DNA from: Chlorokybus atmophyticus
Taxonomy: Eukaryota > Plantae > Mesostigma and Chlorokybus algae
Direction: 5' to 3'
NCBI GenBank assembly: GCA_009103225.1
Contig: RHPI01001965.1
Location: 573,114 to 637,113 of the forward strand
Length of the DNA stretch: 64,000 nucleotides
In this document: positions 33,402 to 41,341 of the stretch, in pieces
Layout: the number at the start of each line of letters is the position of its first letter
Position numbering within the stretch: position 1 is the first letter of the stretch
Made by a program: the position numbers and the translations under genes
Notes under the pieces: generated by a model
What the model was told of the DNA's origin: nothing
The model's input: only the letters and a program-made list of their open reading frames with translations
Databases searched by the model: none

Positions 33402-34288
33402 CCTGGTGGTTTCAATGCCACAGTCGCTGGTGCAGTTGTTGGGCCAGGAAAGCGCAGACCCGGGGCTGATCTGGCACGCATGGGCAATCTGGTGGCGGGC
33501 GTGCCGACGTGGAGGAGCGCGCGACCGACCGCGGCCGCCTCGCGCTATATCGCGCGCATGCACGTCGCTCCACGTCACTCCTTCGCGCGGATGGAGCAAG
33601 AGTAGCTGTTGAGGCCTCCATTTGAAATGGTCTACAGGTACTAGTATTTGTCCATTTCATCAACTTGCATATCGTAAAGACACGTACATTACAACCCTCA
33701 CTCAAATGTCAGAGTTAAATTTCACTGCATCCTTTCGCTATGCTGACCGCACCAAAAGTCAATGCATTGTTATTATCGTTAACAAGGCCTGTAATAATCT
33801 ATCAAAATTACAACCCAATGCAATCAAAATTTGTTTTAAGGTTGCAATGTACGTGTCTACGCTATAGTAGAGTGGCACTTATTCGTGTTAAGATAGATAA
33901 CTCATTTGCTGATTGCTTTTGTCTGCTATCATGTTAAGCAATAGAGAAATGCCAACACCACAGCATTATGATACCCGTATGCAGGCTTCTGCTTTGTTCT
34001 TGCAACCTCTCCTGATGCCAATTCTCCTTTATCTTTATCAGTACCGCGTGCAGGCACCCGCAGCCAAGCATCCTCTTCTCCCACGCCCGCAGTGTATTGC
34101 GTGATGTACATGCCACTGCATGCCGCAACAATGCTTTGTGTTATTTGTGCAAGTTTCAACCTTTTTTAACCATGAGCTACAGGTTTTTACAAAAAGCTCT
34201 CAACCCCTTCGTACCGAAAAAAACTTGTATTCTATAAAGTAGTATATTATATTCGCAGCGCGGCGCGAGGGGGGGGGGGGGGGGGGGG

Positions 34289-34453
34289 NNNNNNNNNNNN
34301 NNNNNNNNNNNNNNNNNNNNNNNNNNNNNNNNNNNNNNNNNNNNNNNNNNNNNNNNNNNNNNNNNNNNNNNNNNNNNNNNNNNNNNNNNNNNNNNNNNNN
34401 NNNNNNNNNNNNNNNNNNNNNNNNNNNNNNNNNNNNNNNNNNNNNNNNNNNNN
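34289..34453. other. Assembly gap (N run)
   Basis: N run preceded by a poly-G tract. Confidence 0.99.
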
Positions 34454-35725
34454 GAAGGGGGGGGGCATGCAGTTCTTGCCAGCTATGAGTGATATTACTT
34501 GCTTCATATTGTTGTAATCCGACCATGCATTGTCAGCTTCGACTTATCTTGTGCATTACCTTATAAAAAACACACATAGTATTATCACATGGTACCAAGT
34601 CGTAGGCCTTGAACGCGATTGGTTCCCGCAATATCAAAGCTGCTTGGCGCAACGCTTTGTCAACATTTGTGGTGACTCCATGTACTATATACGCCATGCC
34701 TGGCCCTTATAGGCTGGGTGGTGAAGTTGATACTAATGTGAGTATTTAAGAGTAACGTTTTTTTGGTTGAACGGCATTTTTATTATTAATGAATTGCTTA
34801 ATGGTTAAAATCTATACGCCATGCATCTGCGACAAGCAGCGCTCCATCAATGCTAGCCTTGCTCTTTTAGCTGTAGCTGCAAATGTGCAATGCGTACATT
34901 GCTCGGGGAAGACGCATCATGTGCACTATGTACAATGCATTACGTGCTTTGATAGGACTGCGTATGTGCGCACATTTACTACATGTTACAAACTTGCGTG
35001 TTGCAGCAATCTGTAAGACGCAATGTACATTATAAGCGATCATACACGCAGCAACGCCCGAGATAAAGAGTGTTGCTTTGAAGCGGCAGCACATGGACGT
35101 GGAGGTTTGGTTTAGCTTTGCATGTTACACCATTGCTCGTCAATGAGATCACGCAAATGAACAACGTTCAACCTACTCGCATATTGAGGGGATCGTCTTC
35201 GTAGCTATCTAGGGTATGCCCCGCTGCTCACACATCTGCATGTGCTCAGCATGCACTTGTATTGGCATTGACGTATGTTCTATAGCTTATGCAGCATAGC
35301 GTGTTGAGGTTAAGTTTGCAATGAAAATATGCGTTCTCAATTCAATATCGACATAAGATGTCATTGGACTCCCATAACCAATGATTTTTCAGGGCTGCAT
35401 GAAACATAAGTACTGTTTAATGTTTAAATACTTCCTTTTAATGACCTCTGATAAAGCCTTAACGGTGCAGCTAAACTTAGCCGTTTGCTGTGGTCATTGA
35501 CTCATTCACCCACGAGGCCGTTGGACTGCTCAGTGTCAAAGCGGTTCAGGTGCCATACACATGTACATGAACAGCTCACTCTAGGTGAGTTTTACGACAT
35601 CAGAGGTACCTACGTGTTTCAACAAATTCAAACCGTTGCCAGTGGGCCACCCAAGCCAAATTCAACCCTTGCTTTGCTGACGCACATAATCAGTTGAACC
35701 GGCAGTTACATGCCGTTAGGGACGC

Positions 35726-35791: not shown

Positions 35792-36745
35792 GCAAAGAGA
35801 ATGGGGCGCGCCGCGCTTGCCGATTCTGCTCCGCAAGTGACGTGGTTGCCTGCGTCGATTGCTCCCATCATAAACTGACCATCACATGAGACTAACCAAT
35901 TAGCCCCTTTATTAAATGCCTTGCATTGAGACCAGCTCTCATCTTAGGCCATGCATGACTCTGGTAGGCCCGTCATCACCAGCAGATAGAGATTCAAAGG
36001 CGCGGCTGATTCTCGCAAAGTTTGATGCCGCAAAAAAGTGTCAACCGCCTGCTGCGCAGTTGAATTGGCCCGTCGCGTCGCGATGTCCGCCAAATCTTGT
36101 ATCCAGCCTGTGACCTCCCGACTTTTGTTGCCTGTACGACTGATATACTGTGTCAGATCTGTGCTTAAATACCGGCAGCGCATTGCGGACGCTCCGGTCA
36201 CGAAATGTGATAATCGGAGCCTGAAACCAACAAAGTGCATCGATCTCATGCGACGGCCAGTTAAAGTCTTTTGGCAGGATGTGTTTCTGAGTGGGTGACT
36301 GTATGAGGTGTGACACACAGCGCATGTGTCTGCGTGTGTACAATTGGCGTTGTTCTGCTTACCCTTCTCCAGCTCCGTGTCCTTCACTGTGTCCTCTGCC
36401 TTGTCTGCGTGGCGATTGCCTTGCTGGCTTGCCGACAGGGGGCGGGAAGACAGTAGTAGACTAGTCAGGGTCACGTTGCTGTGCAGCAACAACCAACCTG
36501 CCGCCGCTGCTGCCGTCGCCGTGAGGTGGCTCCTCTTGTCGATCACCTGGTTGGAGCGACGGCCTCCACTTGTAGTTGGCGGCTTGAAGCTTGAAGTTTG
36601 AAGCTGCAGCAGCATGGCTTGCTGAAAAGTGGGGAGGAAGCTGAATTGGTAGTGCAATTGGTGCAGCGGAGAGTGCAGCAGCTGCGACTACGTGACAGTT
36701 TGAAAGGCAAAGGCGGCAGAGGACGAGGAGCAGGAAGACAAGGTC

Positions 36746-38542
36746 ATGGCGCAGGCGGTGGCTCGGCTGCCAGCCGTGACGACGAGGCTGACTCGGCCAG
36801 ACAGGTGCAGCCTCAAGCCCCGGCGAGGTGGCTTCCCGGCAGCCACTTGCCGCAATGTCGCCGCCTTGAGCACTCGCTGTGAGCAGCAGGAGCCGTCCAG
36901 CACCTCAAGCAGCAGCACCGCTACCTCCAGTGTCCACAATTCACTGTCAATTCAGTCTTCCTCTACCACAGCCGCCCCTCCAGCTGGCCTCACTACTGGC
37001 CGCAGGGCCCTCTTGGCCTCCTCGCTCTGCCCCATTGCCGCCCTGCTGGCTGACCCCAAGCCCCCAGCTGCAAGTAAGCTTAGATTACCAGTTTTTGTCG
37101 CCCAGTCAAGTCATTCACTCGTAATCGACGCTTGTTCCAGTGCAATTTTCTAAATGGCCCTTTGATTTGCACAGAGGCCGGCATGCTAAAGTCGCTCAAG
37201 AGCGACGCGCGAGCTGCGCTCACTTTCTACAACAACACCGACAGTAGGGTGCGTGTGTACTGGGTGAACTACGATGGCGATGCCGAGCTGTATGTGCGCA
37301 TCCCGCCAGGCGGTGTCTGGACTGTGGACACGTTTGCAACACACCCATGGCGCACTGTCCTCAATGAAACGTGAGTGCTGCGTTGGCAGATTGTGCTGCT
37401 TTCTAATCATTGCACTGCTGCTTACAGTCAGGTTGTTTGCGCAGGGGGATTGTGCTGCGCACTTATGTCGCCGCACCAGGACAGCAGATGATTGATGTTG
37501 CCGAGCCAGATGGTACGTCATGCACCTCACAACCAGCAGATTGCCTGTAGTACTTTCAGCTGGTGTTGTATGTGTTTTCACAATTGCCATGACAAACTGC
37601 TCATCCCAACTTGTGGAAATTTGCCCAAGTCTGACTTCAATTGTGCAACAGAGATGCTTGAAACAATTGAAACGGAAATGGAATTGGAGCAAGCAGCGGA
37701 GGAAGAAACTGAGTTTGAGTACGCTAATTCTTTTGATGGCATTGGTGGAGAAGCCGATGCATACGCTTCTGCACAGCTCTCAGCTGTTGTTCAGGTTGGT
37801 AAAATTGCATTGAGTCTCTTTGAGGTGGGCGAGTTTTGGTACTACCTGTGACTGATTATACATGTGTACGGCAGATTCCTTCGTCGGCCATGGCAGTGCT
37901 GGTGTTATCAGTGGACGGCTTTGAAGCGCCTCTACCTGTGCCAGCATCCATGCTTGACCTGGAGTCTGTTGTCTCAGCCGCACAGGTGAGTATTCTGACA
38001 CGGCGTCAATGTGTGCAACTCAGGGAATTTCCATCTGCACATTGTAAGCTGTTTTTGAATGGCAGGGTGAGCGTGGTAGACAACCAGACACGTTTCAGAG
38101 CTGGAGCAGGGCTCTTCATGCAGTTGGTGGACAGGTAGAGTCATTTGACACAGTCTACAACACTTGTGCAAAACACTGCATGTGCTGTGTGTTTTGGTTC
38201 AACACCACCTTTGTTGTGGACACGTGGTAATTGGCTCTCATGTTAAATCAACTTGCGCAGGTGGACAGAGTTACCATCACGCGGTTGGTTGGGCACCAGC
38301 TGTATGCAAGGATTGTCCTCTCCGCTCCCAGCATTGCACCTCAGGCACAGTTTGCGGCGGTCAGCAACCGGGACCCTGCCCGCAATTCGTCCTCCATCAA
38401 CGTAAGGCCTCCAGATGCGATTGCTTTGGCCATCCGCAGCGGTGTGCCCATCTACGTGTGTAAAGATATTGTTGAAGTGGCTGCGCATGCGCGCCTCGGC
38501 TTGCCTGAAGTCGATGAGACTGAGGGAGCCTTGAAGGCTTGA
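36746..38542 (+). CDS. Plastid-targeted fusion: VHL beta-like domain + acidic linker + DUF151/bifunctional-nuclease-like domain
   Basis: Seven exons join in frame: transit peptide..RRALLASS..|LKSLKSDARAALTFYNNTDSRVRVYWVNYDGDAELYVRIPPGGVWTVDTFATHPW|GIVLRTYVAAPG|EMLETIE..|AVLVLSVDGFEAPLPV|RQPDTFQSWSRALHAVGGQ|VDRVTITRLVGHQLYARIVL..NVRPPDAIALAIRSGVPIYV..*. Confidence 0.82.
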
Positions 38543-41341
38543 GCTGCCGGCCTCTACAATAAAGATGCATCTGACTTGGCATTCTGCCAATTGCAATTTG
38601 CCAGCGCCAGATACTGTACAGACATGTGCCCGTGTATGGGCTAGGATATATAACAGGTGCTTTAGTGGTAGGTATTTGTACATAAGCAAGGAGACATTGT
38701 ACATAAGCATAGTCATCCCAGTGTGTACAGAAAAATGCAAGTGATCAGGATATATGCAACATGCATTGTTCACAAAACCCATTATCATGCAATAATTATT
38801 TACCACCTGGAACTACCTCCACTAACCACATGTAGCTATTGTAAGTGATTCCTCCAACCCCATCAGACATACATGTATGCGTTTGCTCATCACCGCATGT
38901 ACATGGCAGGCAATTTATGTGCAGCGCAAGTGCAAGGTGATTGGTCATGTACTCATGCTGCAAAACTGCACATACTCTGCCCTACAACTGAGCTGAGAGC
39001 ATCCGCTGCACTTGCAGATGTGCAGTGTAAAGTATGTGCGCGGACGATTTACTCACATGTGCTAGCAAAACAGTCTAAACTGTGCCAAACGGGTATTCAG
39101 CAGGTGTACCAAATGGGAAGGGGGTTTGCGCATGCACATTGGATGTTAGTCCAGCTGAGGTTGTGTACCAACCTTTGCACAATCAGTGGGCTTAGTATGC
39201 TACAGAACCACAAGCAGGCAATCAGCCCTGTGTATACGGTAGACATGGTACTGTCTTGAAGCCCATGGTCAACTCCAGCACAGGTGTGACACGAGTGCCG
39301 TTGCCATACCCAGCATGACTCTCCATTGCAACTCAGCATCGCATGCTGCTATCCACAGAGGCATGTGCACGCAACCATGCACACCGCGCCAGTGTGTTTT
39401 GGGCTTTTGTAGACACTGCACGCACCAACATTGTTCAGCACACCCACGGATCTTCACATGTCGCCAGCATTCTTCGCAGCTGCCATTCACATGTAGGCAC
39501 CTTTGTGCGTTTGCATATGCGAACGAAGTGGCTATGCAAAGTGGCTAACAGAAGTAGAACGTGCTTAAAACGTGCCTCCACATTGTCTGTGAGTTGGGTG
39601 TTGAATGATATTTTGCACAATTGGACTACTTCAGCACTAACAACAATGTGCAGGCACGAGGACAAAGGGAGGGTACGAAAAAGGAAGCCAAGTTAGCAGG
39701 AACGACCAGTGCCCTTCAGTAACAATCAAGCAACACGACATCATCTGCGACGCGATCGCACAGCATGCTAGCAGTGCATGGGAACTGGCCCTTGTCACGC
39801 TCACAGCATGTCGCAATCGGAATGGTCAAGCACCAGATGCAGTAGCGGGTTAACATGCTTCAGGTGTGAAGCCCGTCGCAGGCTGACTATGCCACACGTC
39901 CAAGGCTCAGCCTGTCAGTGTGTGGGGTAGCACCTTTGTCGTGAGGGACTTGAATCATTGGAGTACCAACAAGGCTGACTGTAGTGCATACACCTCAAGT
40001 GTATACCCACTACACAAGCATGAGTTACGCTGTCTCACTGCTGCCTGAACTGCTCGCTATCACTTGACCAAAAGAACGCACATGTAGCGCAGCACGTGGT
40101 CTGGCACGCACACACACAGGCTATCTATCTATGCAAGCGCCGTGTCCTCCTCCGTGGTCAGGGAGGGAGGGAGGGAGGGAGGGAGGGGGGGGGGGCACAG
40201 GTCTCCACCCTGGCCCTGCCGCCATCGCCGCTATAACTTCCCATGATGACCATCGCCTGTGCCTAAGGCGCAAGCCATGCGCTGGCGGCAGAGGCGTAAA
40301 AAACAAAACGCCTCCAGGCAGGTAGACGTGGGCACAGATGCAGATGCAGTTGCAGTTGATTGTGCACATTGTACAAAAGATGCAAGCTGCATCATGTGTA
40401 TAATATATGCAATGCTGTGCATGTAGCATGAGGTGCTAGAAGTACGCACGTATGGCATAGCATGCACACGTCCTCAGAAACTTGCACACTCAAATTGACA
40501 ACTCACTTTGGACCTAAGGCACAGGCCAAAAGGGGTCCTGCAATGGCTATAAATAAAAATAATTAGAAATAGTAATACGCAAGCGTGGGTGCGACAAAAC
40601 AGTAGCCGAGGTGCTGGATGCATTACTCAACATGATCGAGAATGAGCTGTGTAGCAAGCAGCTAATCTAAGTCAGTCAGATAAGCAGCCATTACTACGCA
40701 GCATCACCTGCAAGTTTGCCATTGATTAATATCAACATATCAAGAACACTGACAGCTGTCACAAACACCTTTCTGCAGTTTGCCACTGTTCTCAACAGAG
40801 AGTTACATCAGTGCACTCAGTCCCTGCAACCATTCAGTATGTTAGCAGTTTGGCGGTCACAGCGGTGTTACCTGTGGCAACAGCAATAATGCATAAATGA
40901 ATGCATCTATGTAGAGGCTGTGGTCAAGCACAAACTGCATGCCCCCGCACTCAATGCATAAAACACGTTATTTGTGCACATGATATTCAGCCTAAAGAAC
41001 AGGGAGCAACAGGGTGCAGGCCTGCGCCGAGTAGGCTCAGCAACAACACCTCTGCTGAAACTATGAACAACACTGAACAATGTACCTAGGTAGGTAAGTA
41101 TGTACACTAGAACAATACACTAGGCCAAACTGCTGGCACAGTCCTCTACACACAGTAGGACCTGTGAAAGAATACTATCGTGCAGCGACCATCACCAGGT
41201 TCACGGTGCACACTCAGATTGTGTACATACCCAGTGCTGGTCGTGTATACTACTATACAAGGCAGGCGTTGCACCAACATGACATGCAGGACCATTATGT
41301 ACAAATGTGGTCATCGCCTCCGGCTCGTTGTGTGAACTTTG

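Follow-up and report, generated by a model that had tools for sequence, protein, structure and literature searches.

The window analysed here is a stretch of 64,000 nucleotides from Chlorokybus atmophyticus (assembly GCA_009103225.1, contig RHPI01001965.1, positions 573,114 to 637,113, forward strand), and on its + strand, at 36746-38542, lies a gene for a protein that joins a VHL-beta domain, the domain known from human pVHL, to a BFN domain, also called DUF151. It is one expressed nuclear gene of this early-branching streptophyte alga. A first-pass annotation, made from the letters of the DNA, had proposed seven exons that splice in frame, and scripted splicing bears this out: the exons give one open reading frame of 1197 nt (398 amino acids and a stop codon), with GT..AG borders at every joint. 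The product is identical over its full length to a protein with the source name jgi/Chlat1/7696/Chrsp64S07150 (P0006 in our set), which phmmer retrieved from 1.84 billion representatives with exon 2 as the query, at 100% identity over residues 111-174.

The gene model is confirmed by two spliced transcript contigs, one each from two runs of two independent studies. The first, of 1915 nt, spans 36302-38812, the second, of 1845 nt, spans 36333-38777, and in both all six joints are identical to those of the model, with zero mismatches. The runs are flagged as guessed RNA only, and we read them as transcriptomes because the contigs are intron-less, the joints are canonical GT..AG and the assemblies are small, with 64-65% of the sampled words. 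A single mRNA that carries all six joints in both studies refutes the alternative that two separate genes had been joined in the model. The start codon at 36746 is fixed by an in-frame TGA upstream at 36701, as there is no ATG, GTG or TTG between the two.

Both domains of the fusion score above their Pfam gathering thresholds in the full protein: VHL (PF01847) with 30.3 bits against a threshold of 21 at residues 114-168, and BFN_dom (PF02577) with 48.7 bits against a threshold of 27 at residues 255-380, covering profile positions 2-108 of 112. Single exons are enough to pass these thresholds, exon 2 reaching 34.2 bits for VHL and exon 7 reaching 35.1 bits for BFN_dom. No other Pfam family, VHL_C and UVR included, matched the full protein at E-values up to 0.1, which agrees with the first-pass remark that the UVR domain, the usual partner of BFN in plants, is here replaced by VHL. 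Along the protein a bipartite presequence is followed by the VHL-beta domain, a variable acidic linker, an FDGxGG motif and the BFN domain, and the chain ends 15 residues past the latter. AlphaFold2, given an alignment of 50 rows, produced a model with a predicted local distance difference test (pLDDT) score above 90 across both domains (for VHL, residues 120-195) and below 50 across the presequence. When this predicted model was compared with known structures by Foldseek, the N-terminal sandwich fell on dozens of pVHL chains (E 2e-8 to 1e-7, probability 1.00), and residues ~235-385 fell on TM0160 of Thermotoga maritima (1sj5_B/1vjl_B; E 3e-11, TM score 0.85 by target, root-mean-square deviation 2.7-3.0 Å over 143 columns).

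The presequence runs from TTGRR through ALLASSLCPIAALLA to DPKPPAAKA and then GMLKS. It contains a twin arginine (R86-R87), an uncharged stretch of 15 residues with a mean Kyte-Doolittle value of 1.77, and the sequence AKA at 109-111. A basic leader, a twin arginine, a hydrophobic h-region and an AxA site together make up the classical lumenal presequence of the chloroplast twin-arginine translocation (cpTat) pathway, as in PsbP- and PsbQ-type precursors. The Chlorokybus protein has in common with PsbP (OE23) and PsbQ (OE16) this bipartite layout, a basic residue in the c-region and the AxA site; the family has no homology to known lumenal protein families. By rule-based features judged on 15 orthologues the layout recurs: RR lies 23-39 residues ahead of the VHL domain in 14 of them and KR in the remaining one, and the leader upstream is 31-146 residues long, basic, acid-poor and often rich in Ser and Thr. 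An uncharged, moderately hydrophobic stretch of 15-26 residues follows directly after RR or KR in 11/15; in three others the residue after RR is charged, and the Botryococcus stretch is interrupted after three residues. The pattern in the orthologues is completed by a small-x-small site and then the conserved xLRSxxS domain start. The presequence is thus predicted to be of the cpTat thylakoid-lumen type, which supports the Tat- or lumen-like signal of the first-pass annotation. Neither the length nor the strength of the hydrophobic stretch suffices for a membrane anchor, and as the stretch lies inside the chain and not at its N-terminus it is not an ER signal.

Table 1. Features of the VHL-beta/BFN gene, in window positions
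Feature	Position	Strand	Basis
mRNA; 5' untranslated region (UTR) ~444 nt, 3' UTR ~270 nt	36302..38812	+	spliced transcript contigs
Exon 1 coding sequence, residues 1-109 and 1 nt; basic, S/T-rich, transit-peptide-like region (residues 1-85) and start of RR signal	36746..37073	+	splice model, transcript contigs
Predicted Tat-type lumen-targeting signal, residues 83-111, spanning intron 1	36992..37179	+	TTGRR, 15-residue uncharged h-region, DPKPPAAKA
Exon 2 coding sequence	37175..37370	+	splice model, transcript contigs
VHL-beta domain, residues 113-197, exons 2-3, with intron 2 inside	37183..37511	+	PF01847, pVHL alignment, AlphaFold2, Foldseek
Exon 3 coding sequence	37445..37512	+	splice model, transcript contigs
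Exon 4 coding sequence; acidic, poorly conserved linker helix (residues 203-221), FDGxGG, first BFN strand	37652..37794	+	splice model, transcript contigs, alignment, AlphaFold2
Family-specific FDGxGG motif, residues 225-230, exon 4	37732..37749	+	family alignment
BFN/DUF151 domain, residues 235-383, exons 4-7, with three introns inside	37762..38494	+	PF02577; phmmer to TM0160, E 3.8e-5; Foldseek
Exon 5 coding sequence	37875..37985	+	splice model, transcript contigs
Exon 6 coding sequence, with QPDTF (residues 288-292)	38066..38134	+	splice model, transcript contigs
Exon 7 coding sequence and stop, without UVR after the BFN domain	38261..38542	+	splice model, transcript contigs, Pfam
NVRPPDA, residues 352-358, degenerate DARPSDA; R354, P355 and D357 kept	38399..38419	+	sequence, family alignment

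The 5' UTR (36302-36745) contains three upstream ATGs, two of which, at 36303 and 36324, open out-of-frame reading frames of 53 and 46 codons, while the third, at 36614, opens an in-frame reading frame of three codons (MAC-stop); the 5' UTR part of the transcript contig may merge a neighbouring transcript. On the minus strand a reading frame of 187 codons (38243-38806) lies over exon 7 and the 3' UTR and is most likely a chance frame opposite a coding region. Further upstream, the G+C content dips to 0.33 at window positions 34000-34500, compared with about 0.50-0.60 around it.

The fusion is not confined to Chlorokybus. Local hidden Markov models made from two alignment halves found both domains in 24 of 162 fetched proteins, and all named carriers are green algae; this range rests on the best 150 of 1290 matches to exon 2, by which land plants and other streptophytes are not excluded. 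The Chlamydomonas reinhardtii orthologue is CHLRE_16g663700v5 (Cre16.g663700, 508 amino acids), and the other named carriers are C. schloesseri, Pleodorina starrii, Edaphochlamys debaryana, Chlorella vulgaris, Myrmecia bisecta, Apatococcus fuscideae and Botryococcus braunii; several transcript contigs without a species name also encode family members. PNU1 (pyrenoid nuclease 1, Cre03.g183550) had been considered as the Chlamydomonas orthologue and was rejected, being a different BFN gene. Word-index homologue searches with the Chlorokybus protein, with the family alignment (A1) and with the VHL region of another fetched protein (P0058) returned one to five family members and no further taxa. 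Structure-based Atlas searches found no large cluster that joins VHL-beta and BFN, and the Chlamydomonas orthologue matched BFN clusters only. In a tree of the VHL domain (83 columns), 15 of the 16 fusions cluster, joined by one metagenomic fragment of 99 residues. This tree is poorly resolved, with one strongly supported branch and with Chlorokybus in the basal polytomy of the cluster; a single origin of the fusion before the split of chlorophytes and streptophytes would be compatible with it.

Two further observations concern the family members. Ten of the 14 sequences in the family alignment end in Ala (KA, RA, EA, SA or TA), as does the Chlorokybus protein with its ...LKA at 38531-38539; the tails vary widely in length and sequence, and kinship inflates the count. 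A conserved C-terminal residue of this kind could serve in recognition, by lumenal proteases with PDZ domains for example. In two gene models of Edaphochlamys debaryana (P0131, P0158) an 18-residue piece of the VHL domain, SHPWRFREASSGRLMAQY, is present twice, probably as a gene-model artefact or an alternative splice form, because the isoform P0157 is without the repeat.

The nearest relatives of the VHL-beta sequence are bacterial VHL-beta domains. The fetched matches other than the fusions carry VHL alone, most of them in at least two copies, and the bacterial proteins have a single domain, tandem domains or giant multi-repeat arrays, with ricin lectin, caspase-like and inhibitor I36 domains as partners and BFN in none of those seen. 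Examples are a caspase-like peptidase that has a signal peptide and, at its C-terminus, a VHL-beta domain (P0066), a protein combining ricin-B lectins with VHL-beta (P0036), and giants of ~1700-2050 amino acids, presumably from bacteria or metagenomes, in which VHL-beta is repeated 5-11 times in tandem (P0001-P0005, P0008, P0009, P0012). By a crude screen ~39% of the bacterial VHL-beta proteins look signal-peptide-bearing, and some of their domains start right after the cleavage site, with the pocket signature and the xLRSxxS start that are likewise found in Chlorokybus. This proportion, together with the lectin, caspase and inhibitor partners, suggests that an extracytoplasmic setting is usual for VHL-beta, and the thylakoid lumen may be seen as its topological equivalent.

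Human pVHL (PDB 1LM8/1LQB/4AJY) shares with the Chlorokybus protein the PF01847 family, the predicted beta-sandwich and an alignment of the pocket that is free of gaps. The first-pass annotation had mapped by eye the five pVHL residues that contact hydroxyproline, and this mapping proved correct: in the HMMER alignment of residues 113-169 with human pVHL 62-118, W88 corresponds to W139, Y98 to Y149, S111 to T162, H115 to H166 and W117 to W168. The motif strings which it had read are all present as well (RRALL 86-90, VYWVN 137-141, ELYVR 147-151, VDTF 160-163, HPW 166-168 and NVRPPDA 352-358). The fusion family shows no variation at T162 and H166 and almost none at W168, and each of the 24 domains that reach the position of W139 has W there. 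A survey of 373 aligned VHL-beta domain instances, taken from 160 fetched proteins that matched the VHL-domain profile, shows how widespread this is. Its 347 non-fusion domains have W at the W88 position in 325 cases, Y (237) or F (26) at Y98, T (296) or S (29) at S111, H at H115 in 302, and W (300) or F (21) at W117, so that W, T/S, H and W are each found in about 86-94%. Judged by these alignments, the pocket residues are a near-universal signature of the VHL-beta family, which is mostly bacterial, and are not peculiar to the Chlorokybus gene. The conserved pocket therefore does not single out this protein: the residues are those of pVHL, as had been claimed, and there is nothing special in having them. 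A conserved ligand-binding role for the pocket is plausible given this family-wide signature; its conservation says nothing specific on hydroxyproline in algae.

In contrast to pVHL, the protein shows no match to an alpha domain with BC box and cullin box (VHL_C), and the beta domain is followed instead by the non-conserved acidic linker. Without an alpha domain and BC box the protein cannot recruit Elongin C or Cul2 and is not a ubiquitin-ligase subunit. It also differs from pVHL, which is cytosolic or nuclear, in its fusion to BFN and in its predicted lumenal location.

Whether BFN is a nuclease domain deserves a closer look. The structure of TM0160 suggested a site formed by T57, H58 and D115, the Asp being universally conserved (PMC7249048). 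These positions are T291, F292 and D357 in the Chlorokybus protein, where QPDTF aligns to the RPLTH segment of TM0160. The triad is incomplete, as the position of H58 is never His in the 14-sequence family alignment (F292 here, V, I, L or M in the orthologues). Invariant in the same alignment are D357, R354, P355, P289, W295, G303, R308, T312, R313, Y320 and R322. The DARPSDA motif is kept in most orthologues, those of Myrmecia and Chlamydomonas among them, and is NVRPPDA in Chlorokybus, an alteration already noticed in the first-pass annotation. TM0160 and Cor (Rv1829) of Mycobacterium tuberculosis share the fold of the Chlorokybus domain, its RP..D motif and the Thr that belongs to the proposed site; they differ in being cytoplasmic single-domain proteins, and the Chlorokybus protein in having F292 in place of H58, a 20-residue insertion before the last strand and NVRPPDA. 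Cor, a dimer made of DUF151 only, was inactive both as a DNase and as an RNase, and in the same study a co-purifying nuclease is suspected behind the results of the plant BBD assays (PMC3870250). With the putative catalytic His absent family-wide and Cor inactive, the nuclease label of BFN/DUF151 is weak, and we regard it as insecure.

The company that BFN keeps points in another direction. Bacterial BFN domains are fused to PDZ, UVR and ECF-type sigma-70 regions, as seen in the structure-based Atlas searches, a variety that does not sit well with BFN being simply a nuclease. The plant proteins BBD1, BBD2 and UVR4 (AT1G75380, AT1G19660, AT5G66050; HCR-DUF151-UVR) resemble the algal family as Viridiplantae BFN proteins with a plastid presequence and a protein-interaction module (PMC8889267, PMC7249048). 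In them UVR stands at the C-terminus, and they interact with CLPC1 in the stroma, whereas the algal family has an N-terminal VHL-beta domain, a Tat-type signal and no UVR. The Arabidopsis plastid BFN-UVR proteins were strongly enriched among interactors in a CLPC1 trap (PMC8889267). The Atlas fusions and the CLPC1-trap data together fit a view of BFN as a module that works beside protein-interaction domains.

We tentatively propose that the VHL-beta/BFN protein is a lumenal adaptor or scaffold. The basic, S/T-rich N-terminal part would bring the precursor into the chloroplast, the twin-arginine signal would send the folded protein via cpTat into the thylakoid lumen, and cleavage after AKA, just ahead of the VHL domain, would release a soluble mature protein of ~287 amino acids. 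This protein would dimerise through BFN, as do TM0160 and Cor, both of which are dimers with a conserved cleft (PMC3870250, PMC7249048). The dimer would then present two VHL-beta pockets, whose ligand on lumenal partners may be a determinant of the proline or hydroxyproline type or a comparable ring carrying a hydroxyl group; it would be a bivalent adaptor, and neither a nuclease nor an E3 subunit. A non-nuclease role is suggested by the family-wide absence of the putative DUF151 catalytic His and by the compartment, as we know of no nucleic acid in the thylakoid lumen. Taken as a whole, the proposal of a lumenal adaptor seems to us a serious possibility, if one still short of being probable.

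Several points weigh against it. To our knowledge there is neither a prolyl hydroxylase nor hydroxyproline in the lumen. Pfam and NCBIfam TAT-signal models, which are built on bacterial signals, gave no match to five presequences. No localisation or proteomic record for the family was found in the literature, and Cre16.g663700 was found neither in the papers searched nor in the searched parts of the Chloroplast Protein Atlas supplements. The residue at Y149 is F in 8/24 fusion-family domains, so that one pVHL-type contact is unconserved. The sole basis for inferring dimerisation through BFN is the homologues, and the strict conservation of R354, P355, D357, R308, T312, R313, Y320 and R322 points beyond passive dimerisation. 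Finally, plant BBD proteins, which are likewise without the His, have been reported to be nuclease-active as MBP fusions (PMC7249048).

This last point leads to the alternative of a stromal or pyrenoid nuclease, in which BFN degrades RNA or single-stranded DNA in the chloroplast, VHL-beta does no more than tether it to a protein partner, and RR with its hydrophobic stretch does not work as a Tat signal. Membership in BFN_dom, the conservation of D357 and T291 of the site proposed for TM0160, and the description of AtBBD1/2 and OmBBD as DNases/RNases (PMC7249048) would all agree with it, as would the position of another BFN protein, PNU1, at the centre of the pyrenoid; PNU1 is, however, a gene other than the orthologue Cre16.g663700. 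The presence of RR, h-region and AxA directly before the mature domain in 14/15 orthologues, the absence of H58 throughout the family, the decay of DARPSDA to NVRPPDA in Chlorokybus, the inactive Cor protein and the co-purifying nuclease suspected in the BBD assays (PMC3870250) all argue the other way. We therefore hold a chloroplast nuclease to be unlikely.

The other alternatives concern what the pocket binds. If the ligand of VHL-beta were not a peptide but, for example, a sugar or some other ring with hydroxyl groups, the protein would be a factor that binds glycans or small molecules in the lumen. In bacteria VHL-beta domains are found together with ricin-B lectin domains and in giant proteins that repeat them up to about 10-12 times, a behaviour shared with carbohydrate-binding modules, and this would suit such a role. 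We nevertheless think it distinctly unlikely, given that the hydroxyproline peptide is the only characterised ligand of the fold, that the pocket residues contact it, and that we know of no glycans in the lumen. Reading of hydroxyproline itself would make the protein part of an O2- or redox-linked system analogous to PHD-HIF-VHL: a plastid prolyl 4-hydroxylase would mark lumenal proteins, VHL-beta would read the mark and BFN would be the output or assembly module. The five positions at which pVHL contacts hydroxyproline are all retained, among them T162 and H166, the pair that bonds the hydroxyl, and the predicted compartment is the site of O2 production; yet the same residues occur in hundreds of bacterial VHL-beta domains without an assigned ligand, and neither a lumenal prolyl 4-hydroxylase nor its product is known to us, which makes a hydroxyproline reader very improbable. 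One may go further and speculate that such a reader is a plastid counterpart of PHD-VHL without ubiquitin, in which an O2-consuming mark is set where O2 is made, and that green algae have retained it while land plants apparently lost it; to this thought we attach an even slimmer chance.

The lumenal adaptor, then, is the reading we prefer. The first-pass annotation had called the module undescribed. This holds for the literature, in which we found no account of the VHL-beta/BFN combination, of the conserved Tat-type signal or of the predicted compartment; it does not hold for databases, where the gene is modelled as Chlat1 7696 and the fusion is already machine-annotated, with precomputed PF01847 and PF02577 labels in at least nine named green algae. 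Both domains, the gene model and the Pfam labels were thus already known, while the combination, its Tat-type signal and its restriction to green algae are undiscussed in the papers found. The names in use give little guidance: the UniRef name for the orthologues is "BFN domain-containing protein", and one Chlorella vulgaris record (KAL4852886.1, P0161) is automatically named "von Hippel-Lindau disease tumor suppressor", which is misleading because the protein has no alpha domain and has a BFN domain. This is a practical annotation problem in at least one public record.

Should the predicted lumenal location hold, a VHL-type ligand-binding domain and a BFN/DUF151 domain would for the first time have been assigned to the thylakoid lumen, and this would speak against BFN being a nuclease in that setting. 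Cre16.g663700 of Chlamydomonas would then offer a tractable route to the ligand of the widespread, uncharacterised VHL-beta domains outside animals. That nearly all VHL-beta domains, bacterial as well as algal, keep the pocket residues of pVHL is a lead to the ancestral function of the fold.

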